Shown here one piece after another: positions 1,796-55,685 of a DNA stretch of 64,000 nucleotides. The position numbers and the translations under genes are program-made. The notes beneath the pieces were generated by a model. The model was not told the origin of the DNA. It made no database searches and saw only the letters and a list, made by a program, of their open reading frames with translations. The stretch lies in the sequence record PV745554.1; one strand, 5' to 3'. Within the stretch, counting starts at the first letter, position 1. Every line of letters starts with the position of its first letter.

Positions 1796-1963
1796 TTGAC
1801 GCCCCCGCGTTCTGAGGAACACGGGGGCGTTTTGACGTCGGCGCATTTCAGACTTGACGCGCGAGCATTTCAACGCCGGAGCGTTTTGACGCGGGCGCAT
1901 TTTCGATTCAACGCGCGAGCGTTTTGACGTCCGAACGTTTTTCAACTTGACGTCGTTTCATTT
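1796..1963 (+). repeat. Array of ~8 copies of a 17-bp element T(T/C)(G/A)ACG-N5-(G/A)C(A/G)TTT
   Basis: Starts at 1796, 1832, 1854, 1870, 1886, 1908, 1924 and 1947; preceded by a 12-bp perfect inverted repeat (1743-1777). Confidence 0.85.
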
Positions 1964-2980: not shown

Positions 2981-3140
2981 GCAAGCCGCCCGGCGCCCTC
3001 CAGAGGACGCTGGGCGAACGCTTGCCCAGCGCGTTAACCATGTTTTTGAAAAGCGCCCAGCCCCGCCGTAGCGCCCCTACGGTTCGAAGAGCCCGGCCCT
3101 GCCGGTCCTGCCGGCTACAGGTCCAATCTAGCGGCCAATC

Positions 3141-3217
3141 CTTAACAAAACGTAAACGCCAGAATCTTTTTCGGGGGCTTTCGCGTTTACGTTTTGTTAA
3201 GAAATAGGGTCTAGTGT
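3141..3217. promoter_or_regulatory. Second divergent pair of CtrA-box-like early promoters
   Basis: Same 17-mers at 3141-3157 (-) and 3185-3201 (+); CTAGTGT -10-like element. Confidence 0.8.
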
Positions 3218-4804: not shown

Positions 4805-5323
4805 ATGCCGGAATTTGTCCTAGATACGTCGGGCCAAGTCGCCCCGCCCGCCGCCGCCAAGCTTTGGCCGCACCCCCTGGCCTGGAATCAGTTGAGCGAT
4901 TTTGCTCAAGGCTACATCGAGGCCCTGTTTTTCACCGAGTCGTCGCCGGCCTATGACCGCGCCGAATGGTTCGGCGCCGAGTGTCAAGAGGCCCTGGAGG
5001 AAGGCACGGCGGACGGGAACATTCCGGGCGATGTCGGATTCGCCGACCTCGCGCCCGCCACCCTGGCGCGCATCGTCGCCGATTGCGCCGACTTCCAACG
5101 CCAGCACGCCGACGCCCTGGCCAAGGCCTATGACCACGGCGGCGCGTCGGGCGACTATGACGACGCCGCCGCCGGCCGTGATTATTGGTATACCCGCAAC
5201 GGCCATGGCGTCGGGTTCTGGGATCGCGGACTCGGCGCGATCGGTGAGGCCCTGAGCAAGGCCGCCCGCTACAGCGAGCAAAACGCCTCTTTCGAGGATG
5301 ACGAAAAGGTCTATCTCTCTTAA
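4805..5323 (+). CDS. Early hypothetical protein
   Basis: TTGGAG RBS; 172 aa; ...DYWYTRNGHGVGFWDR motif. Confidence 0.8.
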   Translation: MPEFVLDTSGQVAPPAAAKLWPHPLAWNQLSDFAQGYIEALFFTESSPAYDRAEWFGAECQEALEEGTADGNIPGDVGFADLAPATLARIVADCADFQRQHADALAKAYDHGGASGDYDDAAAGRDYWYTRNGHGVGFWDRGLGAIGEALSKAARYSEQNASFEDDEKVYLS

Positions 5324-8699: not shown

Positions 8700-9527
8700 A
8701 TGACCAAAGCCCGCCACGCCTTCGAGGCCGTCCGCGTCGAATCGGCCGGGGAGTCGATCCTTGATCGCTTCACCGTGACCAAGAAACGCACCGCCGAACA
8801 AGCCTATGACGCGGCCGAAGCCCTTTGCGAGGCCGCCCGCGCCCTCGCGCCGGGTCAAGCCCATTTCGTCCGCGAAGTAAACGCGCCGGGCGAAGAGACG
8901 CCCGCCCAAGCCCTGGACCTCGCCAGCGTCTCGACGGCCGACCTCATCGCCGAACTCTACCGCCGCCCGGTCGCCGTCTGTGTGTTCGAAGGCGTGGACG
9001 TGCTCGCCGAAGCGGGCGGCGCCTTCGATGACGCCGACGACGCCGCCCAATGGCTGGCCAGCAAGTCCAGCTATATCGGCGACGCGATGAGCGGCGCCGG
9101 CTGGGACTCGGTGCGCTATCACCTGACCGCCGACGGCCGCGCCACCGACGAGGGCGACGACGAGGAAGAGCCCGCCGACGCCCTCCCCGTCGCCGTGACC
9201 CTGGAGCAAGGCGACGCCGTCCGCGTGGTCGGGCGCTTCGCCACCGTGGGCGAAGCCGTCGATTTCCTGGCCTCTCCGATCCGCGATCAAGACGCCCTCG
9301 CCGCCGGCCGCTACGGGATCGACGCGCCGCACGGCGTGGCCAGCGACGCGGACGCCGTGACCCTGGCGAACAAGCTGGGCTTTCAAGTATTCCGCTCCAT
9401 GGGGTCGGTCTACTACGCCCCGCCCGGCGTGGCGGTTTCCGGCAACGCCGACGGCCGGGGCTGGAAAGGCGGTTTCGACGACATCGCCGCCGCCGCCCTC
9501 GCCGCCCTGGCCACCGTCGACCCCTAG
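8700..9527 (+). CDS. Early hypothetical protein
   Basis: AAGGAGG RBS; 275 aa, acidic. Confidence 0.78.
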   Translation: MTKARHAFEAVRVESAGESILDRFTVTKKRTAEQAYDAAEALCEAARALAPGQAHFVREVNAPGEETPAQALDLASVSTADLIAELYRRPVAVCVFEGVDVLAEAGGAFDDADDAAQWLASKSSYIGDAMSGAGWDSVRYHLTADGRATDEGDDEEEPADALPVAVTLEQGDAVRVVGRFATVGEAVDFLASPIRDQDALAAGRYGIDAPHGVASDADAVTLANKLGFQVFRSMGSVYYAPPGVAVSGNADGRGWKGGFDDIAAAALAALATVDP

Positions 9528-20677: not shown

Positions 20678-20694
20678 TGTCGTGAATCTTGACA
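20678..20694 (+). promoter_or_regulatory. Late-type promoter motif TGTCGTGAATCTTGACA
   Basis: GANTC directly abutting a TTGACA -35; one of ~10 copies. Confidence 0.75.
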
Positions 20695-47772: not shown

Positions 47773-48548
47773 TGGCTATCCAGAACCCCCACTCCACCAC
47801 GCCGGGCGTCATGCCCCACCTGACGCCGGGCGAGATCGGCGTCAACAAGGCCGATGACATCCTCTGGTTCCGGTCCGAGGGCCGCCGCGTGCCGATCATC
47901 CTGAGCGATCTGGATCGGGCGCCGCCGCTCGACGGCCTGACCGGCGCGCCGCTGACCCTGGAAGGTGGCCAGCCGATCTGGAACGCGCATCTGGCCCCGT
48001 CCTCCGTGGTCAATGGGCAGGTCAAGGTCGATCTGCCGCCGGCGACGGGCCTGCACGCCATGCCCAGCGTCCTGCTGCAAGGCCTGGGAGCCGATCGCGC
48101 CCTGGCGGCCAACGATCTGGACCTCTCGCCCTTCTACGTCCGGTCCGACTCCATCACCCTGACCCAGTTGGCGTTCAGCGTCCGCTCGGCGGGCGCGCCG
48201 GCCATGCGGGTGGGGATCGTCGACAGCTTCGGCGTGGTCCAGGCCGACATTCTGGTCGCCGCGCCCGTGGTGGGCGCCAACGTGGTCAACCTCTCGCCGG
48301 TGCTGACGCTCCAGCGCGGCGTCTACCGCACGATCCTGGCAACCACCGGCGCGGTGACGATCGGGGTGGTCACGGGCGCGCGCATGGAGCAGGGCTGGGA
48401 CATCATCGGGGACACGCCCTCCTTCATCCACGGCTACAGCGGCTCGAAGAACACCGGCGGGGGGATCGGCAGTTTGCCGGGCCTGACCGCGCGGCGCTCG
48501 GGCGTGCCGGGTCAGGATCATTCGGTCCTGATGCGCTGGACGGCGTAG
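47772..48548 (+). CDS. Fibre-associated protein
   Basis: TAATG coupling; LTPGEIGVNKAD motif like the fibre C-terminus. Confidence 0.75.
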   Translation: MAIQNPHSTTPGVMPHLTPGEIGVNKADDILWFRSEGRRVPIILSDLDRAPPLDGLTGAPLTLEGGQPIWNAHLAPSSVVNGQVKVDLPPATGLHAMPSVLLQGLGADRALAANDLDLSPFYVRSDSITLTQLAFSVRSAGAPAMRVGIVDSFGVVQADILVAAPVVGANVVNLSPVLTLQRGVYRTILATTGAVTIGVVTGARMEQGWDIIGDTPSFIHGYSGSKNTGGGIGSLPGLTARRSGVPGQDHSVLMRWTA

Positions 48549-48650
48549 TGGGGAGAGCCGGGTGGGGCTTTGTATCGCTGGGGGAGCGAGGGACGGGCCG
48601 CTCCCCGGCGGCCCACCCGCTCTTTATAGACGGCCCTTTCCCGGCCCGCA

Positions 48651-48667
48651 AGACGTGAATCTTGACA
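48651..48667 (+). promoter_or_regulatory. Late-type promoter motif
   Basis: AGACGTGAATCTTGACA. Confidence 0.7.
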
Positions 48668-48720
48668 TGGTGGAAGATCGGGGTTAACCTGCGCGCTCAT
48701 CTGGAGTTTCGAGCGCCACC

Positions 48721-48984
48721 ATGGCTGAGCTTGTCCGCATCTATCACCCTGAGACGAACGAGCCGTTCGACGTGATCCCGTCGACCGCCGAACGTCTGCG
48801 CCTGGGTGATGGTCCCGACGGGCTGGTCTGGCTCTCGCAGCCCTTCGAGCGCGTCGCTGTCGAAGCCGCGCCGGAAGCCCCCAAGGGGCGAGGTCGTAAG
48901 CGCGTCAGCGCGCCCGTCTCGGAAGAAGCCGAAGACGACGGGTGGCGTGACGTGCCGACCGAGGAAGATCGCGAAGCCGCGTAA
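48721..48984 (+). CDS. Hypothetical protein with KGRGRKR motif and acidic tail
   Basis: TGGAG RBS; 87 aa. Confidence 0.7.
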   Translation: MAELVRIYHPETNEPFDVIPSTAERLRLGDGPDGLVWLSQPFERVAVEAAPEAPKGRGRKRVSAPVSEEAEDDGWRDVPTEEDREAA

Positions 48985-49028
48985 GGCGCTTCGTCTTCCA
49001 CTCTGCTGAAATTCGGTCTCAGTCCCAT

Positions 49029-49104
49029 GTCGGTCTAGCTCATGGGGTAGAGCGGCGGTCTCCAAAACCGCGCGTGGCAGGTTCGAGTCCTGCGTCCGGC
49101 GCCA
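49029..49104 (+). tRNA. trnW: tRNA-Trp(CCA)
   Basis: Cloverleaf; GCGGT-CTCCAAA-ACCGC; TTCGAGT T-loop; encoded CCA. Confidence 0.92.
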
Positions 49105-49108
49105 TTTC

Positions 49109-49183
49109 GCATCCGTAGTATATAGGTGATTACAGCGCGTTGCCAACGCGTAGAGTCGGGTTCGAGTCCCGACGGATGCTCCA
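49109..49183 (+). tRNA. trnG: tRNA-Gly(GCC)
   Basis: GCGCG-TTGCCAA-CGCGT; acceptor GCATCCG/CGGATGC; CCA. Confidence 0.92.
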
Positions 49184-49187
49184 TTTC

Positions 49188-49261
49188 GCGGGTATAGCTC
49201 AAAGGGAGAGTTGCTGCCTTCCAAGCAGAAGATGCGAGTTCGAGCCTCGCTATCCGCTCCA
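49188..49261 (+). tRNA. trnG: tRNA-Gly(TCC)
   Basis: CTGC-CTTCCAA-GCAG; CCA. Confidence 0.92.
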
Positions 49262-49555
49262 ACCTCGTGGTGAGGTGAGAACGCCCTCCTCATGCACCGC
49301 TTCGGCGGTAAAGTAGGCTCCAGCCGAAGAGATGCGGGACCAGGGGACCCCGCCACCACGAACGAAGTGCGCCCCAGGTACGCCTCTGACCGAGAAAGCC
49401 CGCTGGCCGTGGGTGAAGTGTATGGTCAAGCGTCTGGGTCCCCGTCCGCCAGGACCGGCGAAGGCCATATGCGCCGAATTCCTGGACCGGATCGTAGGAG
49501 GGGAGCGTTGGCGCCGGCCCAGCAGGGAAGGGTGAAGAGCCCAGCCGGCAATTTT
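49262..49555 (+). ncRNA. Candidate structured non-coding RNA
   Basis: No credible ORF; ACCGC-TTCG-GCGGT hairpin; GGGGACCC/GGGTCCCC long-range pair; CCAGGA/TCCTGG stem. Confidence 0.35.
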
Positions 49556-49569
49556 CTTCAACAACAAGC

Positions 49570-49598
49570 TTGACAGCCGTCGAGTTTCGTGAGAGCCT
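49570..49598 (+). promoter_or_regulatory. tRNA sub-operon promoter 1
   Basis: TTGACA-17nt-GAGCCT; near-identical layout to the promoter at 50186. Confidence 0.72.
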
Positions 49599-49608
49599 CC
49601 TCAACATT

Positions 49609-49671
49609 ATGACGCACCTCCTCACCCGTTACGAACGCGAGGCCACCGGCCTCGATACCACCACCGCCTAA
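49609..49671 (+). CDS. Putative leader peptide 1 (MTHLLTRYEREATGLDTTTA)
   Basis: Starts ~4 nt after the predicted TSS; carries GAA, GAG and GAT codons upstream of tRNA-Glu and tRNA-Asp; overlaps alternative hairpins. Confidence 0.55.
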   Translation: MTHLLTRYEREATGLDTTTA

Positions 49672-49703
49672 AAGCGGTTTTGGTCCGAGGCCTCTTGTGA
49701 TGT

Positions 49704-49781
49704 GGCCCGGTCGTCTAGCGGTTTGCAGGATTCCTGACTTTCAATCAGGAGAGCGGAGTTCGAGTCTCCGTCGGGCTTCCA
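49704..49781 (+). tRNA. trnE: tRNA-Glu(TTC)
   Basis: CCTGA-CTTTCAA-TCAGG; CCA. Confidence 0.92.
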
Positions 49782-49806
49782 CACCCCCAACTCATCTCTG
49801 AGCTTT

Positions 49807-49881
49807 GGTGCCGTCGTATATGGGTTATTATCACCGGCTGTCTCCCGGTGGAAACGGGTTCGAGTCCCGTCGGCATCGCCA
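49807..49881 (+). tRNA. trnD: tRNA-Asp(GTC)
   Basis: ACCGG-CTGTCTC-CCGGT; acceptor GGTGCCG/CGGCATC; CCA. Confidence 0.92.
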
Positions 49882-49944
49882 GCCCTCGCAGCAAATCCAG
49901 GTTCCAGCGCGGCTGTTCCGCGCGCCTGCATGCACGAGGCTACC

Positions 49945-50166
49945 ATGTTTTTCGATCCCTCCTCGCAGTCGAGCGACGCGCTCCTGCGCCACGTCTCCAC
50001 CCAATCTCCGTATGCGGAAGCGGCTCGCACCGAGTTGCTGTCCCGAGGCCTCGTTCCGCTCCTGACGCGGTTCAACGGCTGGCGCCTCGCCCCGAGCGCG
50101 CCGTTTCCGCAGCACCTCATCCCGCGCCCCGATCCGCTCGCGAAGTACACGTGGCGGGCGGGATGA
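49945..50166 (+). CDS. Hypothetical protein within the tRNA cluster
   Basis: GAGG RBS; 73 aa. Confidence 0.55.
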   Translation: MFFDPSSQSSDALLRHVSTQSPYAEAARTELLSRGLVPLLTRFNGWRLAPSAPFPQHLIPRPDPLAKYTWRAG

Positions 50167-50185
50167 AAAATATTCACCACGACGC

Positions 50186-50214
50186 TTGACATCCGTCGGG
50201 AGTTGTGAGAGCTT
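50186..50214 (+). promoter_or_regulatory. tRNA sub-operon promoter 2
   Basis: TTGACA-17nt-GAGCTT. Confidence 0.75.
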
Positions 50215-50307
50215 ATGGACTGTCACGGATCACGACACTCCTCGGAGTGCAAAAGCGTGATCCTTCGTTTTTCACGGCCGCCAGCGGGTGGCCAGTCGAG
50301 AGTTGTC

Positions 50308-50445
50308 ATGTTCGCCTTGTCGCATCTCAGCCTGAGCACGAAAGCCGCCTCCCCGGCGACGCTTTCGCTTGCCCTGCTGGCGACGGCCGCGAAGCCCTCG
50401 ACCAAGCCGACCACCTCGGCCTCGCACTCGACGGAGACCCACTAG
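50308..50445 (+). CDS. Leader peptide 2 (45 aa; 42 codons are A/L/S/H/T/K/P)
   Basis: MFALSHLSLSTKAASPATLSLALLATAAKPSTKPTTSASHSTETH; the residue set equals the downstream tRNA set. Confidence 0.85.
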   Translation: MFALSHLSLSTKAASPATLSLALLATAAKPSTKPTTSASHSTETH

Positions 50446-50547
50446 GGCTCTCGTCTCGGGTGCAGGCCTTGGAGCCGCACCCGCTACCTACATCCTGTAG
50501 ACCTAGCGCAAGGCGGCTCCTCACCAGGGAGACCGCCTTTTCTTTTT
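50419..50547 (+). promoter_or_regulatory. Attenuator 2 (alternative hairpins plus terminator)
   Basis: Hairpin 50419-50467 around the stop codon; CGGGTGC/GCACCCG (50457-50483); antiterminator GGAGCCGC(50471-78):GCGGCTCC(50513-20); terminator 50510-50547. Confidence 0.82.
50510..50547 (+). terminator. Rho-independent terminator between leader 2 and its tRNA operon
   Basis: AAGGCGGCTCC...GGAGACCGCCTT followed by TTCTTTTT. Confidence 0.88.
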
Positions 50548-50559
50548 CGCGTTGATCAT

Positions 50560-50635
50560 CGGGGTGTAGCTCAGTCGGTAGAGCGCTCGGTTCGGGACCG
50601 AGAGGCCGTGGGTTCGAGTCCCGCCACCCAGACCA
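50560..50635 (+). tRNA. trnP: tRNA-Pro(CGG)
   Basis: CTCGG-TTCGGGA-CCGAG; CCA. Confidence 0.93.
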
Positions 50636-50642
50636 ACGCCAT

Positions 50643-50719
50643 CGGGATGTAGCTCAGTTTGGGAGAGCGCGCGGCTGGGGGCCGCGAGGCCGCAGGTTCA
50701 AGTCCTGCCACCCCGACCA
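50643..50719 (+). tRNA. trnP: tRNA-Pro(GGG)
   Basis: CGCGG-CTGGGGG-CCGCG; CCA. Confidence 0.93.
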
Positions 50720-50724
50720 ACAAC

Positions 50725-50797
50725 GCTGTTGCGCGTGGCTTCGCGCCCACCCCTTGGTATGGGGCGGTAGAAGGTTCAATTCCTTCCAGCAGCACCA
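50725..50797 (+). tRNA. trnT: tRNA-Thr(GGT), atypical D-arm
   Basis: CCCC-TTGGTAT-GGGG; acceptor GCTGTTG/CAGCAGC; TTCAATT T-loop; CCA. Confidence 0.78.
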
Positions 50798-50802
50798 ACA
50801 AC

Positions 50803-50872
50803 GCCGATGCCTCTGGGAGGACGCGCCTTTCGTAAGGGTGCGAGGTGGGTTCAATCCCCACTTTCGGCTCCA
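50803..50872 (+). tRNA. trnT: tRNA-Thr(CGT), short D-arm
   Basis: CGCCT-TTCGTAA-GGGTG; CCA; 70 nt. Confidence 0.78.
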
Positions 50873-50927
50873 TCAAACAGCCTGCGGGCTATATCGGAGA
50901 TCAAGTTTCATAGCCTCCAGGCTATAT

Positions 50928-51014
50928 GGATGTGTCACCTCAGTGGCGAGAGGAACGGGCTCTTAATCCGTCAGCGCAAGCTCACCGTGGGTTCGAGTCC
51001 CACCACATCCTCCA
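50928..51014 (+). tRNA. trnK: tRNA-Lys(CTT) with long variable arm
   Basis: ACGGG-CTCTTAA-TCCGT; acceptor GGATGTG/CACATCC; 87 nt. Confidence 0.88.
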
Positions 51015-51019
51015 ACAAT

Positions 51020-51109
51020 GCACAAGTGACCCGAGCGGCGAAGGGCGTCGACTTTTAATCGACTAGGCGTCCAGCCTCACCGAGGGTTCGAGTCCCTCCT
51101 TGTGCTCCA
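51020..51109 (+). tRNA. trnK: tRNA-Lys(TTT) with long variable arm
   Basis: GTCGA-CTTTTAA-TCGAC; acceptor GCACAAG/CTTGTGC; 90 nt. Confidence 0.88.
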
Positions 51110-51112
51110 TGT

Positions 51113-51199
51113 GCGAATGTGGCGGAACTGGTAGACGCGCCGGCCTCAGGTGCCGGTGCCCTTCGGGGCGTGTGGGTTCGAGTCCCACCTTTCGTACCA
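51113..51199 (+). tRNA. trnL: tRNA-Leu(CAG)
   Basis: CCGGC-CTCAGGT-GCCGG; class II variable arm; CCA. Confidence 0.93.
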
Positions 51200-51206
51200 A
51201 CGACAT

Positions 51207-51294
51207 GCCTTGCTGGCGGAAGTGGTAGACGCACTGTTCTCAAAAAGCAGGCCGGGCGACCGGGCTCTGGGTTCGATCCCCAGGTGAGGCACCA
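51207..51294 (+). tRNA. trnL: tRNA-Leu(CAA)
   Basis: CTGTT-CTCAAAA-AGCAG; CCA. Confidence 0.92.
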
Positions 51295-51301
51295 AGACTG
51301 A

Positions 51302-51389
51302 TGCGAAGTGGCGGAAACTGGTAGACGCACCGGCATGAGAGGCCGGCGCCCTTCGGGGCGTGAGGGTTCGAGTCCCTTCTTCGCGACCA
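51302..51389 (+). tRNA. trnL: tRNA-Leu(GAG)
   Basis: CCGGC-ATGAGAG-GCCGG; CCA. Confidence 0.92.
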
Positions 51390-51392
51390 ATG

Positions 51393-51454
51393 TCCCGATC
51401 GGGAAGATTCCAGGCGGCGCGGCGCTCGCGACACCCGGATTTTCCCGATCGGGA
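51393..51454. repeat. Two copies of the palindrome TCCCGATCGGGA in a tRNA spacer
   Basis: 51393-51404 and 51443-51454. Confidence 0.8.
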
Positions 51455-51469
51455 AGACGACGAGATTAT

Positions 51470-51540
51470 GCTGATCGCCGCTGGGCGGGGAGCGGGTTGT
51501 GTCCCCGCTAGGCACGGTTCGATCCCGTGGGTCAGTACCA
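51470..51540 (+). tRNA. trnH: tRNA-His(GTG), atypical D-arm, A73
   Basis: GCGGG-TTGTGTC-CCCGC; acceptor GCTGATC/GGTCAGT; ACCA. Confidence 0.8.
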
Positions 51541-51545
51541 GATAC

Positions 51546-51616
51546 GGGGTATGCGCAGGGCGCAGGCATCCTTTGCAAGGAAGTCGGGGTGGGTTCGAGT
51601 CCCACATACTCCACCA
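51546..51616 (+). tRNA. trnA: tRNA-Ala(TGC), atypical D-arm
   Basis: TTTGCAA loop; G3:U70 in GGGGTAT/ATACTCC; ACCA. Confidence 0.85.
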
Positions 51617-51620
51617 ACAT

Positions 51621-51710
51621 GGAAGGTCAACCGGACAGGCGCGCCGGGACTGCCTCGAAAGCAGATCGCACTCTCCGGGGTGTGGGGATCGAGACCTCGG
51701 CCTTCCTCCA
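51621..51710 (+). tRNA. trnS: tRNA-Ser(CGA)
   Basis: CTGC-CTCGAAA-GCAG; long variable arm; CCA. Confidence 0.9.
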
Positions 51711-51714
51711 ATAT

Positions 51715-51804
51715 GGTGAGCGAACGGGACAGGCGTGCCCGGTCCGCCTGGAAAGCGCGACGCACTCTCCGGGGTGTGGGATTCGAGTTCTCCGCTCACC
51801 GCCA
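51715..51804 (+). tRNA. trnS: tRNA-Ser(GGA)
   Basis: CTGGAAA loop; long variable arm; GCCA. Confidence 0.9.
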
Positions 51805-51808
51805 ACAG

Positions 51809-51898
51809 GGTAGGCGAACCGGACAGGCGCGCCGGCGCCGTTTGCTAAACGAGCGGCACTCTCCGGGGTGTGGGATTCAAGCTCTCCGCCTACCGCCA
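51809..51898 (+). tRNA. trnS: tRNA-Ser(GCT)
   Basis: TTGCTAA loop; long variable arm; GCCA. Confidence 0.9.
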
Positions 51899-52174
51899 TT
51901 TTGATGTTGACGCCGGCCAGCACCGATGTCATACGTCACGACAGAGCCAACGCCCTCGGCCGGGTTGGTGGATGTGCCGGTTGCATCGCGCCCCGTCGAG
52001 CCCTAGTAGCTCTTGCCGTGGAGTTTTCCGCCTCCCTCCCAGACAAGGAGGCGGACCCCTACATCGCGATCCAGTGATCGTCGGCGACGGGCGCCGTCAG
52101 AGCCCCTTGCGCGCGGGAACGCTGCGGAGGGGATCGTCCCGACCACATTTTTCGACCCACGTTAACTTTTCTTC

Positions 52175-52203
52175 TTGACCTTCCCGAAAACGTAGTGTAG
52201 CTT
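52175..52203 (+). promoter_or_regulatory. tRNA sub-operon promoter 3 (leaderless transcript predicted)
   Basis: TTGACC-17nt-TAGCTT; ATG 8 nt after the -10 and no Shine-Dalgarno. Confidence 0.72.
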
Positions 52204-52210
52204 TCCCGTC

Positions 52211-52306
52211 ATGAGCAAGTCGTACCGTCAATTCGTGCAGATTCAGGTCGTCCGGAATTTCCGGGCGGGCCGTTCGCGCATGGATGATGGCGGGACCTTT
52301 ATCTAG
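52211..52306 (+). CDS. Leader peptide 3 (MSKSYRQFVQIQVVRNFRAGRSRMDDGGTFI)
   Basis: Codons 5-18 are all decoded by tRNAs of the downstream operon. Confidence 0.85.
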   Translation: MSKSYRQFVQIQVVRNFRAGRSRMDDGGTFI

Positions 52307-52372
52307 GTCCAGACACCTCAACCCAATTCGCGAAAGGCCCGCCTGGACACCCAGGCGGGCCTTTTTCTTTTT
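52261..52372 (+). promoter_or_regulatory. Attenuator 3 (antiterminator vs terminator)
   Basis: 52261-52278 pairs 17/18 with 52329-52346, overlapping the terminator 5' arm. Confidence 0.87.
52333..52372 (+). terminator. Rho-independent terminator between leader 3 and its tRNA operon
   Basis: AAAGGCCCGCCTGG-acac-CCAGGCGGGCCTTT followed by TTCTTTTT. Confidence 0.92.
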
Positions 52373-52429
52373 CCGTTTCGCTGATCCGCAGGAGATCGCA
52401 GATGAACAACGGGGGCTAGTCCTCCACAT

Positions 52430-52514
52430 GGATGCTTAAAGCTGGAGGGCTCCAGCCGGGGGCTGTAAACCCCCTCTCTTCGGAGGAGTGGTTCGATCCC
52501 ACAAGCATCCACCA
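52430..52514 (+). tRNA. trnY: tRNA-Tyr(GTA)
   Basis: GGGGG-CTGTAAA-CCCCC; variable arm; ACCA. Confidence 0.92.
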
Positions 52515-52519
52515 ATCAT

Positions 52520-52595
52520 GGACTCGTAGCTCAGCAGGTAGAGCGCCGGCTTGAAACCCCGGAGGTCGGAGGTTCGATTCCTCCCGTTTCCACCA
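52520..52595 (+). tRNA. trnF: tRNA-Phe(GAA)
   Basis: TTGAAAC loop; ACCA. Confidence 0.9.
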
Positions 52596-52600
52596 ACAAC

Positions 52601-52676
52601 GCCCGATGAGCCAGATGGGAAGGCACCGCTTTGACATGGCGGCATTGAGAAGGTTCGATTCCTTCATCAGGCACCA
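52601..52676 (+). tRNA. trnV: tRNA-Val(GAC)
   Basis: CCGCT-TTGACAT-GGCGG; ACCA. Confidence 0.9.
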
Positions 52677-52681
52677 ACCAC

Positions 52682-52757
52682 GCAAGTGTAGCTCAGTTGG
52701 TAGAGCAGCGGACCGATAATCCGCCCGTCCCTGGTTCGAGTCCAGGCATTTGCACCA
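52682..52757 (+). tRNA. trnI: tRNA-Ile(GAT)
   Basis: GCGGA-CCGATAA-TCCGC; ACCA. Confidence 0.92.
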
Positions 52758-52764
52758 TTTCTGA

Positions 52765-52840
52765 TGTGGCATAGCTCAGGGGTCAGAGCGCGCGCTTGAT
52801 AAGCGTGAGGTCGGTGGTTCGAGACCACCTGTCACTACCA
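52765..52840 (+). tRNA. trnI: tRNA-Ile(GAT), second copy
   Basis: CGCGC-TTGATAA-GCGTG; ACCA. Confidence 0.9.
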
Positions 52841-52874
52841 ATTCCCAGGCCCGGTGGAGATGCGCCGGTTCTGT

Positions 52875-52948
52875 AGGCGATTAGCTCAATGGTAGAGCAG
52901 GGGTGCCACATACCTCGGTCGTAGGTTCGATTCCTACATCGCCCACCA
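52875..52948 (+). tRNA. trnV: tRNA-Val(CAC)
   Basis: GGGGT-GCCACAT-ACCTC; ACCA. Confidence 0.88.
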
Positions 52949-52954
52949 ACATGT

Positions 52955-53028
52955 TGAGGGTTCGTCTAACGGTAGGACGCCTGGGTCTGGTCCAGGTAAT
53001 CTAGGTTCGAGTCCTAGCCCCTCATCCA
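52955..53028 (+). tRNA. trnQ: tRNA-Gln(CTG)
   Basis: CCTGG-GTCTGGT-CCAGG; TCCA. Confidence 0.9.
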
Positions 53029-53034
53029 AGTTGT

Positions 53035-53108
53035 TCTCGGGTCGTCTAATGGTAAGACATCTGGTTTTGGTCCAGAGGATTGGGGTTCGATTCCTTGGCC
53101 GAGAGCCA
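53035..53108 (+). tRNA. trnQ: tRNA-Gln(TTG)
   Basis: TCTGG-TTTTGGT-CCAGA; GCCA. Confidence 0.9.
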
Positions 53109-53125
53109 ACTGCTTTAGAGTTCAT

Positions 53126-53200
53126 TCCAGTCAATGCACAAGGTGTGCAGCGGCACTGTTAATGCCTGTGAGCCCGGTTCGATTCCGGGGTCTGGAGCCA
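53126..53200 (+). tRNA. trnN: tRNA-Asn(GTT)
   Basis: GGCA-CTGTTAA-TGCC; GCCA. Confidence 0.9.
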
Positions 53201-53225
53201 ACACGCCGGCCAAGGCCGGTCATGC

Positions 53226-53308
53226 GCCCTGGTAACCGAGGGGGATTACGAATCCCTTAGTCGTAGCAGGAGTTGAAAAGGGTGGTTCGAATCCACTCCA
53301 GGGTGCCA
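53226..53308 (+). tRNA. trnR: tRNA-Arg(ACG)-like, lacking a normal D-arm, long variable region
   Basis: GGGGA-TTACGAA-TCCCT; acceptor GCCCTGG/CCAGGGT; TTCGAAT T-loop; GCCA. Confidence 0.68.
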
Positions 53309-53315
53309 AATCTAT

Positions 53316-53398
53316 AGCGCGCAGGCCGATCAGGATCATCGTCAGGCGTCGCCCTCCGAAGGCGAAGAGGCCCGGTTCGAGTCCGGGGCGCGCTGCCA
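53316..53398 (+). tRNA. trnR: tRNA-Arg(CCG) with enlarged D region
   Basis: TCGCC-CTCCGAA-GGCGA; acceptor AGCGCGC/GCGCGCT; GCCA. Confidence 0.82.
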
Positions 53399-53401
53399 AC
53401 T

Positions 53402-53479
53402 GCGCGGGTAGCTCAACGGAACCAGAGCAGCCGTCTTCTACACGGTGGGTTGGGGGTTCGAGTCCCTCCCCGTGCGCCA
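53402..53479 (+). tRNA. trnR: tRNA-Arg(TCT)
   Basis: GCCGT-CTTCTAC-ACGGT; GCCA. Confidence 0.92.
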
Positions 53480-53816
53480 AAACTTGACGGGCAATGCCGA
53501 ATCGCCCAACTTCGACCCTGGCTCTCGGTGGGCCACGATTGCACGCCGTCGGTGCCCTGGCCGTACACCCAGGGAGCAGCCCGGCGGCGTTCCAACACGG
53601 TTTCTGGACGATCTTCGAACGCGGCTTGCCGTGGAGGGGTGCTGGATAGGGCCGAGGTAGGAGGAACCATCGAGCATCTCCTAATCCCGGCCTGGGCCTC
53701 CTGGGGGCTCCGCTGGGTCGATCAGGGCCTGACCCGACCCCGGAGATGCGCCGACCTAGATCACCCAGGATCGCTGGGTCGGTTGAAAGGGTCTGAAATT
53801 TTCTGGCTCCTATGTG

Positions 53817-53946
53817 TTGACACGCATTTCGGAGCCGGCTACAACCCTCCTCGTAGAGCGGCGCTGGGGCCTGAAGGCCCCAATCGTTGAGCCTCTGCGT
53901 TGTCGTCAGAAACGGCCCGCCGGCATCCCGCCGCGCGGGCCGTTTC
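53817..53946 (+). ncRNA. Candidate small RNA with its own promoter and a terminal hairpin
   Basis: TTGACA at 53817; TGGGGCC-TGAA-GGCCCCA hairpin; GAAACGGCCCGC...GCGGGCCGTTTC hairpin (53909-53946). Confidence 0.4.
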
Positions 53947-53985
53947 GTCATGGGCGTCATGCGACCTTGAGTCCACCGTGGGTAG

Positions 53986-54002
53986 TGTCGTGAATCTTGA
54001 CT
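53986..54002 (+). promoter_or_regulatory. Late-type promoter motif
   Basis: TGTCGTGAATCTTGACT. Confidence 0.72.
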
Positions 54003-54070
54003 TTCGACCACCTTTCCGGTAGCTTCCCCTTCATCACCAACGCTCATAAGTCGGGGACTAGAGAGCCGAT

Positions 54071-54469
54071 ATGTCGCAAGACCACACCGGCTCCGCAACG
54101 CAGAGCCAAGAACACATCTTTCGTAAGCTGGATGAGCTTGGCGCAATGCACATGCGTACCCGCGAGGACATGGCCGAAGTCAAGGAGAAGGTGAAGACCA
54201 TCGCCTCCTCTCAGGAGCGCTTTGAGCGCGACGTTTGGCGCGAGATGGACATTCGCCACGCCGAGACCAAGGAGCAACTGGCCGCCATCAAGAATCAAAC
54301 CGCCGATCGGATCGACGAGATCGAGGCCAAGGTGAACACCATTCGCGAGGAGCGGATCGCCGAAAAAGCCCAGTGGCGTGGCCCCGAGAAGGTCATTGCC
54401 GGCATCGTCGCCCTGGCGGGCGGCGTCACCGCGATCGGCGTTCTCTGGAGCATCTTCAAACCCCACTAA
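54071..54469 (+). CDS. Coiled-coil protein with a C-terminal TM helix (holin-like candidate)
   Basis: Heptad-rich body; VIAGIVALAGGVTAIGVLWSIF. Confidence 0.7.
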   Translation: MSQDHTGSATQSQEHIFRKLDELGAMHMRTREDMAEVKEKVKTIASSQERFERDVWREMDIRHAETKEQLAAIKNQTADRIDEIEAKVNTIREERIAEKAQWRGPEKVIAGIVALAGGVTAIGVLWSIFKPH

Positions 54470-54574
54470 GCCTACAGTCAAGCTTGTTCGCCTGCGGCCA
54501 GAAGTCGCGGTTCTTGACACCCCCCAGCGGCCCGAGCTAACCATAGGGTCATCTGTTCCTGGGGAGTTTCCTAG

Positions 54575-54796
54575 ATGGCTGCTGCGCTTACCCTCGTCTC
54601 CTGCGAGACGAACTTTTCGACCACCACGGACACCGATCCGGACGCGGCGCACGAGCGCCTCATTCTGGTCCTCAACACCGCCTCAGAAGCGGGCCTTGGT
54701 GAAATGACGTTGGAAGTCAAAGAAGAGATCGAGGCCCTGCTCAAGCAGGCGTCTATCGAACTCTCGAACTGCCGGATCGTGGGGGGAGTTCCTTAA
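54575..54796 (+). CDS. Hypothetical protein
   Basis: GGGGAG RBS; 73 aa. Confidence 0.62.
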   Translation: MAAALTLVSCETNFSTTTDTDPDAAHERLILVLNTASEAGLGEMTLEVKEEIEALLKQASIELSNCRIVGGVP

Positions 54797-54818
54797 TCGC
54801 CATCCCAGAGGGAGCGAC

Positions 54819-55685
54819 GTGTCCGAGTCTTCCGAATTCAACCCGCTCGACCAATCCCAGTTCCCTCCTCGCCTCACCAAGGCTGCTGCGCGTCAGGCGC
54901 GGCGCCAGGAGCGCAGCCAGAAAAAGGACCCCACGGCGAACAAGCCCAACTACAAGGCGCTCGAAGCCAAGACTGAACGCCAGAAGCGCTACATCCAGGC
55001 GCTGAAGGCCGGCGAGAGCGCCATCGCCATCGGCGGGGCCGGCACGGGGAAGACCTACATCCCGTCCCGGCTCTTCGCCAAGAAGCTGATCGAAGGCAAG
55101 ACCGAACGCCTGATCATCGCCCGCGTCACCGCCTCGCGGGCCAAGCACGCCCTGGGCTTCCTGCCCGGCAAGCTCGAAGCCAAGCTGGCCCCGTGGCTGG
55201 TGCCGGTGATCGAGGGCGTCAAGGCGGAAATGAACGCCCAGACCTATACGCAGTTGCAGGAGGCCGGCAAGATCGAGTTCGCCTCCTTCGAGCACATGCG
55301 CGGCCGGACCTTCGGCGAGTGCTGCGTCCTGCTGGACGAGGCCCAGAACGCCGACTACAAGGACCTGAAGATGGTCCTGACCCGTTGGGGTGAGAACGCC
55401 CAGTACGCGGTCACCGGCGACGTCGACCAGATCGACGTGGACGACTCCGGGCTGGACACGGTCATCGACATCGTCGAGGCCAACGACATCCCCATCCACG
55501 TCATCGAGTTCACCGACGAAGACGTCGTGCGCTCGCCCATGGCCAAGGCCTGGGTCAAGGCCTTCTCCGCCCACGAGGGCAAGGACGGCCGGCCCCGGCG
55601 CTTCCACCGCCCGGCTGTCAGGAATCTTGACGCTTTGCCGGCGTTCATCGATAATGGCCATGTCACGAAACCCGTGGCATCGTGA
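54819..55685 (+). CDS. phoH: PhoH-family ATPase
   Basis: GGAGTGKT Walker A; LGFLPG; HMRGRTF; LLDEAQN; GDVDQID; DVVRSP. Confidence 0.95.
   Translation: MSESSEFNPLDQSQFPPRLTKAAARQARRQERSQKKDPTANKPNYKALEAKTERQKRYIQALKAGESAIAIGGAGTGKTYIPSRLFAKKLIEGKTERLIIARVTASRAKHALGFLPGKLEAKLAPWLVPVIEGVKAEMNAQTYTQLQEAGKIEFASFEHMRGRTFGECCVLLDEAQNADYKDLKMVLTRWGENAQYAVTGDVDQIDVDDSGLDTVIDIVEANDIPIHVIEFTDEDVVRSPMAKAWVKAFSAHEGKDGRPRRFHRPAVRNLDALPAFIDNGHVTKPVAS

Follow-up and report, generated by a model that had tools for sequence, protein, structure and literature searches.

The enterobacterial leaders of ilvGMEDA (Leu/Val/Ile) and thr (Thr/Ile) are multivalent leader-peptide attenuators, and those of his and leu work as relays of more than four alternating hairpins, with the rare CUA codons in leuL setting the sensitivity. 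Aminoacyl-tRNA synthetase genes are controlled by the pheST attenuator (pheM leader) and by T-box riboswitches, and in pyrBI-type attenuation the translating ribosome occludes the terminator. The tRNA arrays of phages, for their part, are also viewed as counter-measures to tRNA-targeting defenses. Here, we describe a phage tRNA locus at positions 49,570 to 53,479 of a 64,000-nucleotide stretch of sequence record PV745554.1 (hereafter, the window), in which three blocks of tRNA genes (B1, B2, and B3) are each preceded by a promoter, a short open reading frame (ORF; leaders L1, L2, and L3, respectively), and a hairpin region, an arrangement that an initial annotation had proposed and that we could confirm. 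We consider it likely that blocks 3 and 2 (and possibly block 1) form separate tRNA sub-operons in which host-type promoters are followed by ribosome-mediated transcription attenuators sensing the cognate codons, and tRNA supply probably sets the amount of tRNA transcribed. The support is in silico and comprises anatomy, conservation, codon matching, compensatory changes in L3, and predicted polarity, from which we infer leader translation, regulated termination, and the trigger.

The window DNA is that of a CcrRogue-like Caulobacter phage; from 49500 to 53500, it shows zero mismatches to BL64 and RBC8 and a near-perfect match to CcrRogue, phages that belong to Poindextervirus in the subfamily Dolichocephalovirinae. 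Homologous leaders precede the same blocks in Shapirovirus (phiCbK, Swift, and Ccr10), Poindextervirus (Rogue, BL10, and BL57), Colossusvirus (Colossus and PW), and Bertelyvirus (CcrSC, CcrBL9, and RB23), as well as in three groups of Brevundimonas phages (Kikimora/Gurke, Bambus/Domovoi, and Bajun). A single new relative, a freshwater metagenome contig, carries the same promoter, a leader reading MSKSYRQFVQIRVRRNFRAGRLRMGDVSTETV, the attenuator, and the gene order Tyr-Phe-Val-Ile-Val-Gln-Asn..Arg, and is an independent environmental copy of the L3 system. A search of IMG/VR for further relatives returned known isolates only, and a scan of bacterial genomes with the L3 pattern gave zero matches. 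The in-frame conservation of the leader ORFs, on which the initial annotation had made its proposal depend, extends across five or six Dolichocephalovirinae lineages, with an intact ORF in every relative examined; indels within the ORFs are exclusively multiples of 3, and those downstream measure 1, 2, or 4 nt. In addition, rho-independent terminators are independently annotated at all three positions directly before the blocks in phiCbK and Swift.

Genomes of the phiCbK group carry 23-28 tRNAs per phage, a set that Gill et al. (2012; PMC3556154) proposed as a supplement for codons that phage genes use commonly. The words "leader" and "attenuation" are absent from that paper, which describes no control element for the tRNAs, and the text of a phiCbK RNA-seq paper (PMC10688885) does not mention tRNAs. 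Full-text literature searches found no description of demand-dependent or leader-controlled transcription of phage tRNA arrays; leader-peptide attenuation is a known type of switch, and, among papers searchable in full text, its application to tRNA genes is apparently unreported. Membership of a described RNA family by sequence (Trp, His, Leu, and Thr leaders, T-box RF00230, and riboswitches) was rejected, there being zero matches to these families in 48500-54500; a cmscan search of this region against Rfam, at E up to 1, gave only tRNA, skipping-rope, and sub-threshold chance hits.

The window holds 31 tRNA genes, all on the plus strand, and 28 of them fall into the three blocks, as initially annotated and as verified with ARAGORN and by reading of anticodon loops:

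49704-49881, plus strand: block B1, two tRNAs, Glu(UUC) and Asp(GUC), found with ARAGORN.
50560-51898, plus strand: block B2, 14 tRNAs, comprising in its first half Pro CGG, Pro GGG, Thr GGU, Thr CGU, Lys CUU, Lys UUU, and Leu CAG, and in its second half Leu CAA, Leu GAG, His, Ala UGC, Ser CGA, Ser GGA, and Ser GCU, found with ARAGORN at default and relaxed settings.
52430-53479, plus strand: block B3, 12 tRNAs, Tyr GUA, Phe, Val GAC, Ile GAU (twice), Val CAC, Gln CUG, Gln UUG, Asn GUU, Arg ACG, Arg CCG, and Arg UCU, found with ARAGORN and from anticodon loops.

The probable leader 3 attenuator

L3, which precedes the Tyr/Phe/Val/Ile/Gln/Asn/Arg block, was delineated from the ORF list and from codon and folding analyses, and has the following parts:

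52175-52203, plus strand: leader 3 promoter, TTGACC, 17 nt, TAGCTT, with the ATG exactly 7 nt on.
52211-52306, plus strand: L3 ORF, 31 codons, MSKSYRQFVQIQVVRNFRAGRSRMDDGGTFI.
52223-52264, plus strand: control tract, YRQFVQIQVVRNFR.
52246-55, plus strand: segment 1 (codons V V R), pairing with segment 2.
52261-78, plus strand: segment 2 (codons R A G R S R), nearly identical to the terminator 3' arm.
52292-52311, plus strand: stop-codon hairpin.
52329-46, plus strand: segment 3, pairing with segment 2 over 18 positions.
52332-52372, plus strand: terminator, with its 5' arm at 52332-46, a loop, its 3' arm (segment 4) at 52351-65, and a T-run to 52372.

The control tract comprises 14 consecutive codons, all within the seven amino acids of B3, whereas such runs reach at most 9 codons in the real ORFs of the phage and at most 8 in the 531 other short ORFs of the window, where L3 ranks first of 532. 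Across 11 sequences, 161 of 163 tract residues belong to the set, as against 38/173 in the rest of the peptide; the tract varies in sequence between phages, as in YRNNVRQIRVRQFN and YRQNVQNIRVVRFY, yet stays in the set. The match is confined to one frame (14/14 codons, versus 2-8 in the five other frames), and 10 of the 11 isoacceptor classes are covered within the 14 codons (P ~0.008 in a codon-usage simulation given the composition). By all of our codon-match controls (real ORFs, all short ORFs, the five other frames, and the codon-usage simulation), a chance or compositional artefact was rejected for L3 and L2; for L1, it was not rejected.

The structural statistics, obtained from a 10-phage alignment and 500 shuffles, point to a set of alternative pairings in L3. 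The terminated state is 84% paired, with nine pairs changed on both sides, a result that 0/500 shuffles reach. The terminator (3:4), a 15-bp stem at 52332-65 followed by TCTTTTT, is 94% paired with four compensatory pairs, and the antiterminator helix (2:3) is 83% paired with six pairs changed on both sides. Compensatory changes are found in each of the 1:2, 2:3, and 3:4 pairings. In CcrSC and Bajun, a change of GGGCGGG to GGACGGG in segment 2 is matched by a C-to-T change in segment 3.

These data bear on the view that the locus is not regulated at all, the hairpins being leaky terminators, insulators, or elements of tRNA-precursor processing or stability, and the ORFs being untranslated by-products that conserved RNA structure yields in GC-rich DNA. 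RNA structure does constrain part of each ORF (AGRS in L3 and the ERE/GRD region in L1), variability by codon position is not strongly periodic (0.28, 0.25, and 0.32), and off-frame ORFs rich in Ala, Pro, Ser, and Thr (A/P/S/T) are common. We nonetheless judge this view very unlikely, given that (i) the tracts vary while keeping to their set, with the signal in one frame; (ii) the distance from the -10 hexamer to the ATG is fixed, and indels keep the frame; and (iii) segment 2 copies, and co-varies with, the terminator 3' arm, which would be purposeless in a plain terminator.

Attenuation further predicts a dependence of terminator folding on ribosome position. In our ribosome-scan model, the RNA 3' of the ribosome was folded with the ribosome placed codon by codon, at equilibrium and not kinetically, in eight phages for L3. 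The probability of the terminator, P(terminator), is 0.94-0.99 with no ribosome in 7/8 phages (0.16 in CcrSC), drops to 0-0.2 in 7/8 phages for several tract codons in the A site (0.7-0.8 in Colossus), and is ~1.0 from codon 14 through the stop. The L3 polarity predicted at equilibrium is therefore the classical one in seven of the eight phages. A separate equilibrium measure of "pre-pairing" gave no separation between the no-ribosome and stalled states, the 2:3 helix exceeding 1:2 in length, and we retained it only as evidence that segment 2 partners segment 3.

In all L3 loci (phiCbK, Colossus, RB23, CcrSC, Kikimora, Bajun, and the metagenome contig), the -10 hexamer is separated from the ATG by exactly 7 nt, a spacing that predicts a leaderless mRNA. 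Nine phages share a similar promoter geometry at L1 (-35, 17 nt, -10, and 6-10 nt to the ATG). Judging by these spacings, the L3 mRNA should be leaderless and the L1 mRNA leaderless or nearly so. Led and leaderless mRNAs are translated equally well by the host (PMC4117421). L3 is thus modeled as a textbook four-segment attenuator on a leaderless mRNA, and it is the best-supported of the three.

Leaders 2 and 1

L2 precedes the Pro/Thr/Lys/Leu/His/Ala/Ser block and is longer than L3, with these parts:

50186-50214, plus strand: leader 2 promoter, TTGACA, 17 nt, GAGCTT.
50308-50445, plus strand: L2 ORF, 45 codons, MFALSHLSLSTKAASPATLSLALLATAAKPSTKPTTSASHSTETH, annotated as CcrRogue_gp083.
50418-30, plus strand: segment alpha (codons S A S H S), inside the ORF.
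50430-55, plus strand: stop-codon hairpin.
50457-84, plus strand: hairpin H, with beta (5' arm and loop) at 50457-68 and gamma, GGAGCCGC, at 50472-79.
50513-20, plus strand: delta, GCGGCTCC, in the terminator 5' arm.
50510-50547, plus strand: intrinsic terminator, stem 50510-50539 followed by TTTTCTTTTT, ending 12 nt before tRNA-Pro.

The L2 promoter lies ~95 nt upstream of the ORF, leaving a structured 5' untranslated region (UTR) of ~87 nt with a hairpin at 50231-50262; all L2 loci have a TTGAC-17-nt promoter at a similar distance and a weak Shine-Dalgarno sequence (SD), GAGAG or AGGA, 8-13 nt before an ATG or GTG. The UTR hairpin (50231-50270, plus strand) reads GGATCACG...CGTGATCC, with TTCGTTTTT after it in Rogue; BL57 and phiCbK keep this hairpin without conserving the T-run, so that it is probably no terminator. 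An in-frame L2 extension of 76 aa from an ATG at 50215 was rejected, this frame being closed in phiCbK and the ATG standing directly after the -10 hexamer, that is, upstream of the likely transcription start.

Of the L2 residues, 42/44 are in the set {P,T,K,L,H,A,S}, and 36/44 codons are readable by the block 2 tRNAs under strict wobble, a codon score that is reached by 0/8120 windows of the same size in the real ORFs of the phage. All 14 block 2 isoacceptors have a readable codon in L2 (14/14 in 42 codons; P ~0.016). Among the first 30 codons, 26-30 are in the set in every lineage, versus 5-20 in the other frames, and this in lineages with a peptide identity of just 9-33%. The last observation concerns the view that the small ORFs encode functional micro-proteins whose adjacency to tRNA genes is incidental. 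L2 is indeed annotated as a hypothetical protein in several genomes, CcrRogue_gp083 being one; yet a peptide of low complexity that diverges this far between lineages while keeping its composition and position, and whose codon sets match the adjacent tRNAs, makes such a function hardly credible.

Minimum free energy and partition-function folds predict a relay downstream of the L2 control codons, in which alpha would pair with beta, beta with gamma (hairpin H), gamma with delta, and delta with epsilon. The relay stretch is identical in Rogue, BL57, and phiCbK, and CcrSC and BL9 have an analogous mimic, with CCGGGTGC present in both H and the terminator 5' arm; by these folds, the Bertelyviruses are predicted to reach the same relay logic with other sequences. 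With the ribosome in the first ~32 codons of L2, alpha is free and P(terminator) is 0-0.6 (0-0.4 in phiCbK), whereas on the last 12 codons or the stop alpha is masked and P(terminator) is 0.8-0.9. In this equilibrium model, Rogue-type L2 would hence separate stalling from arrival at the stop with the polarity of classical attenuators.

Codon choice within the leaders also follows the tRNA genes. The leaders contain codons that are rare in synonymous usage, namely CGT (fraction, 0.08), CAA (0.17), ATT (0.03), AAT (0.08), TTG (0.05), CTT (0.06), and AAA (0.08). A single AAA codon occurs in L2 wherever the phage encodes a tRNA-Lys(UUU) (Rogue, BL57, phiCbK, Ccr10, Kikimora, Gurke, Bambus, and Domovoi), whereas AAA is absent, leaving AAG alone, in the L2 of phages with Lys(CUU) only (Colossus, PW, CcrSC, CcrBL9, and Bajun); a UUU anticodon loop was sought in these Lys(CUU)-only loci and is absent. 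Likewise, the Bertelyviruses have a tRNA-Trp at the end of block 2 and a TGG inside the L2 tract.

These isoacceptor data help to weigh a different input for the same attenuators, namely amino-acid starvation or general translation capacity, which would couple tRNA transcription to the charging state of the host. The attenuators of trp, his, leu, and ilv sense charged tRNA, such that lack of tRNA and lack of amino acid are indistinguishable, and a tract of seven amino acids would report broad starvation. However, extra tRNA gives no relief of amino-acid starvation, and isoacceptors, including those for rare codons, are sampled beyond what composition requires, with AAA tracking the tRNA-Lys(UUU) gene. 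Such sampling and tracking suggest that the tRNA species is the controlled variable, and we regard a starvation input as unlikely.

L1, in front of the Glu/Asp block, has a different geometry:

49570-49598, plus strand: leader 1 promoter, TTGACA at 49570-75, a 17-nt spacer, and a -10-like GAGCCT at 49593-98, with the ATG 10 nt on.
49609-49671, plus strand: L1 ORF, 20 codons, MTHLLTRYEREATGLDTTTA, with Glu codons at 49633-35 and 49639-41 and an Asp codon at 49654-56.
49638-49654, plus strand: conserved mini-hairpin CGAGGCC:GGCCTCG, a copy of the hairpin 3' arm, located within the R-E-A codons, paired with the hairpin 5' arm.
49648-49692, with a tail to 49703, plus strand: two-tier terminator-like hairpin with a poor U tail, TCTTGTGATGT, adjoining tRNA-Glu.

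The L1 ORF is intact in 9/9 relatives, with E-x-E (a single E in the Bertelyvirus CcrSC) and D conserved. Its last third is the 5' arm of the terminator-like hairpin, with the stop codon in the apical loop; the inner stem of this hairpin is 95% paired with three compensatory pairs, and the hairpin ends 11 nt before tRNA-Glu. The mini-hairpin is a candidate antiterminator or pause hairpin by its predicted pairing (91% of cells paired and one compensatory pair); its signal is weak, since 59/500 shuffles reach the observed value, and its register is shifted in CcrSC. In the folding model, the terminator-like hairpin is occluded from ~3 codons before the Asp codon through the stop, and, over the interval from codon 11 to the Asp codon, the fraction of its pairs that can form drops from ~1.0 to 0 in 9/9 phages. 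In the modeled geometry, L1 is accordingly closer to a ribosome-occlusion (pyrBI-like) device than to one of the trp type.

This layout is what best suits a reversed polarity, whereby smooth translation of a leader would block its hairpin and stalling would cause termination, gating the tRNAs by translation competence: the L1 hairpin, whose 5' arm is the end of the ORF and whose loop holds the stop, remains intact at the Glu codons and is occluded near the Asp codon and the stop, an arrangement resembling pyrBI-type control. L3 and L2 argue otherwise. Their stop codons lie 26 nt (L3) and 64 nt (L2) upstream of the terminator stem, P(terminator) is 0.8-1.0 once the ribosome sits at the stop, and the 1:2/2:3/3:4 layout of L3 is classical, with control codons in and before segment 1. 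Reversed polarity is in our view quite improbable as an account of the locus.

Turning back to codon-matched attenuation by stalling, several observations weigh against it. For L1, Glu and Asp codons make up 3/19 of the total, which is at background level, and B2 amino acids account for 10-12 codons; its U tail is poor, and placing the A site on either Glu codon leaves the hairpin intact. By this A-site modeling, a stall at Asp would give readthrough and a stall at Glu would not, leaving the Glu polarity reversed or null; the conservation of E-x-E may in part reflect a structural constraint, and the case for block 1 as a codon-matched attenuator is weak. For L2, ORFs rich in A/P/S/T are common in the off-frames of GC-rich DNA, which makes its composition alone less striking than that of L3; its relay consists of predicted folds that lack compensatory support, and the hairpin after L2 in Colossusvirus has no U tract. 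For L3, the terminator is more stable at equilibrium than the antiterminator at most stall positions, and P(terminator) in Colossus never falls below ~0.7, so that the switch must rely on the order of co-transcriptional folding, as it does in classical attenuators. As to the relatives, they amount to ~5-6 independent lineages, and TGG also occurs in the L2 tail of Bambus and the L3 tail of PW; we therefore treat the co-variation of leader codons with the tRNA set, a sequence comparison, as suggestive. Finally, ribosome profiling of the host detected no preferential pausing at rare codons (PMC4117421).

The initial annotation had each leader matching its own block, which holds for L2 (42/44) and L3 (the 14-codon run) and fails for L1. 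Its proposal of attenuation by stalling on the codons of the downstream tRNAs survives in silico for blocks 3 and 2, through conservation, compensatory changes, and folding polarity, and does not extend to the Glu codons of block 1. The co-variation that it had envisaged is seen for AAA with Lys(UUU) and for TGG with Trp in the Bertelyviruses, and is blurred by TGG elsewhere and by the small number of lineages.

Promoters, tRNA genes, and neighboring features

The three leader promoters begin at 49570, 50186, and 52175 and resemble one another, in agreement with the initial annotation, and each has A/T-rich DNA upstream. They are unlike the other recurrent promoter class of the phage, which has the upstream motif "GTCGTGAATCTTGACA" and of which one member drives the gene ahead of the Trp/Gly/Gly tRNA group (B0). 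Sites of this other class, all on the plus strand, are at 20689, 23348, 26431, 31636, 34387, 48662, 53997, and 57648 (and 55627). A scan of the plus strand from 48000 to 55000 for sigma-70-like sites found none, nor were separate promoters found 3' of the terminators, the alternative source of tRNA transcripts named in the initial annotation. The gaps between hairpin and first tRNA are 12 nt at L2 and 11 nt at L1, and the former leaves no space for a separate block 2 promoter; the 57-nt gap after the L3 terminator holds just an SD and a mini-ORF. This SD and mini-ORF, between the L3 terminator and tRNA-Tyr (52386-52415, plus strand), read AGGAG, 7 nt, and ATG AAC AAC GGG GGC TAG (MNNGG*). The pair also occurs in BL57, Colossus (MNNGG*), Kikimora (MTGGD*), RB23, CcrSC, and the metagenome contig, and is absent from phiCbK and Bajun. 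Elsewhere, at 1796-1952 (plus strand), six TTGACG motifs are spaced 22-38 nt apart in imperfect repeats (gcgttTTGACG...); this array near the genome end may represent iterons or a repeat with a regulatory role.

ARAGORN at default settings found 24 tRNAs, and relaxed settings added Thr-CGU, Ser-CGA, Ser-GGA, and Ser-GCU and also placed genes at 53226-53308, 53316-53398, and 53126-53200. Direct reading of the anticodon loops identified the last three as Arg-ACG, Arg-CCG, and Asn-GUU, respectively, in place of the ARAGORN typings (Arg-cct, undetermined, and Ile-aat), and added Tyr-GUA at 52430-52515; ARAGORN called orthologues of the B3 genes in relatives. In all, 7/31 tRNAs were missed by both default ARAGORN and Rfam at the gathering score. 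Long variable arms are present in tRNA-Lys(CUU) (87 nt) and tRNA-Lys(UUU) (90 nt), which together span 50928-51109 (plus strand), as well as in tRNA-Arg(ACG) and tRNA-Arg(CCG) (83 nt each; 53226-53398, plus strand), which is unusual outside Leu, Ser, and Tyr tRNAs. The tRNA blocks of Bertelyviruses are rearranged, such that B0 consists of Gly(GCC) and Thr(GGU), Trp ends block 2, and Phe ends block 3 (CcrSC locus, 4841-5010 and 9328-9400; CcrBL9 locus, 3109-3182).

The remaining three tRNAs and the features that flank the blocks are as follows:

49029-49261, plus strand: B0, three tRNAs (Trp, Gly, and Gly), found with ARAGORN.
49265-49361, plus strand: skipping-rope RNA (RF02924), 45.8 bits against a gathering score of 36.7, directly 3' of tRNA-Gly(UCC) and within an insert of ~290 nt.
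53480-54146: ~660 nt after the last tRNA, devoid of annotated plus-strand genes in CcrRogue, with promoter-like sites at 53817 and 53997.

No attenuator leader was seen for B0, which is preceded by an 87-aa conserved gene (an NTPase gene in other genera) with the different promoter class. The ~290-nt insert is missing from phiCbK and Swift, where the gap from B0 to tRNA-Glu is 157 nt, and phiCbK has an annotated terminator in the stretch equivalent to 53480-54146.

Proposed mechanism and comparison with known systems

In the mechanism that we propose, each leader ORF would act as a test strip, its codons limited to the amino acids of the downstream tRNAs and sampling nearly every isoacceptor. 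Were charged tRNA for any tract codon scarce, the ribosome would stall in the tract; the leader segment that copies the terminator 3' arm would then stay free and pair with the terminator 5' arm, and RNA polymerase would read into the tRNA genes. Under fast decoding, the ribosome would instead reach the stop, the anti-antiterminator would re-form or the relay would be masked, and the terminator would fold and end transcription. Phage tRNAs, charged by host synthetases, would speed up translation of their own leader, and this negative feedback would keep each tRNA group, host and phage supplies pooled, at a set point. In block 1, where the ORF overlaps the hairpin 5' arm, only the Asp codon would be placed for readthrough on stalling. 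A more speculative extension, which we put forward as possible rather than probable, is that the leaders let the phage gauge the usable tRNA pool of the host codon by codon and transcribe a block only when one of its members is depleted, be it by host shut-off, by degradation of tRNA during infection, or by an anticodon nuclease or other tRNA-targeting defense. The blocks would then be an on-demand, self-limiting counter-measure, and the first tRNA genes to be autoregulated via their own cognate codons.

The reason for large tRNA sets in phages is still debated, as is the question of their constitutive versus on-demand use; the proposed mechanism, if true, would have their expression set by demand. 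It would also extend leader-peptide attenuation to noncoding products, through a closed loop in which tRNA acts on leader translation and leader translation on tRNA transcription, as well as to leaderless mRNAs, to tracts of seven amino acids, and to phages, and would make the leaders compact natural reporters of individual tRNA availability in Caulobacter.

Among described systems, the ilvGMEDA and thr leaders share with these leaders a short ORF with codons for several amino acids, a set of terminator, antiterminator, and anti-antiterminator, and readthrough upon a stall anywhere in the tract. Unlike them, the phage leaders would regulate not biosynthetic enzymes but the very tRNAs reading the sensor codons, and they sample seven amino acids and 10-14 isoacceptors with about one codon each, on mRNAs that are predicted to be leaderless for L1 and L3, and in a phage. 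The his and leu leaders have their counterpart in the apparent relay of L2 and in the preference of the phage leaders for rare, wobble-read codons, whereas the L2 relay is a predicted one and its tract is heterogeneous rather than a single-codon run. As in pheST and the T-boxes, the product belongs to the translation apparatus and the signal would be the charging of cognate tRNA; however, T-boxes bind uncharged tRNA directly without an ORF, and none was matched at E up to 1, and pheM senses one amino acid and controls a synthetase rather than tRNA genes. A Phe leader of the tRNA-Phe genes of Escherichia coli was considered as a precedent and dropped, the copy checked (next to yqgA) having a plain promoter. 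With pyrBI, L1 has in common an ORF that enters the hairpin 5' arm, such that a ribosome on the last ~8 codons would remove the hairpin; it differs in placing its stop in the hairpin loop and not beyond the hairpin. Taken together, the working principle of the phage leaders appears, by analogy, closest to that of the multivalent ilv and thr leaders and of the his-type relay.

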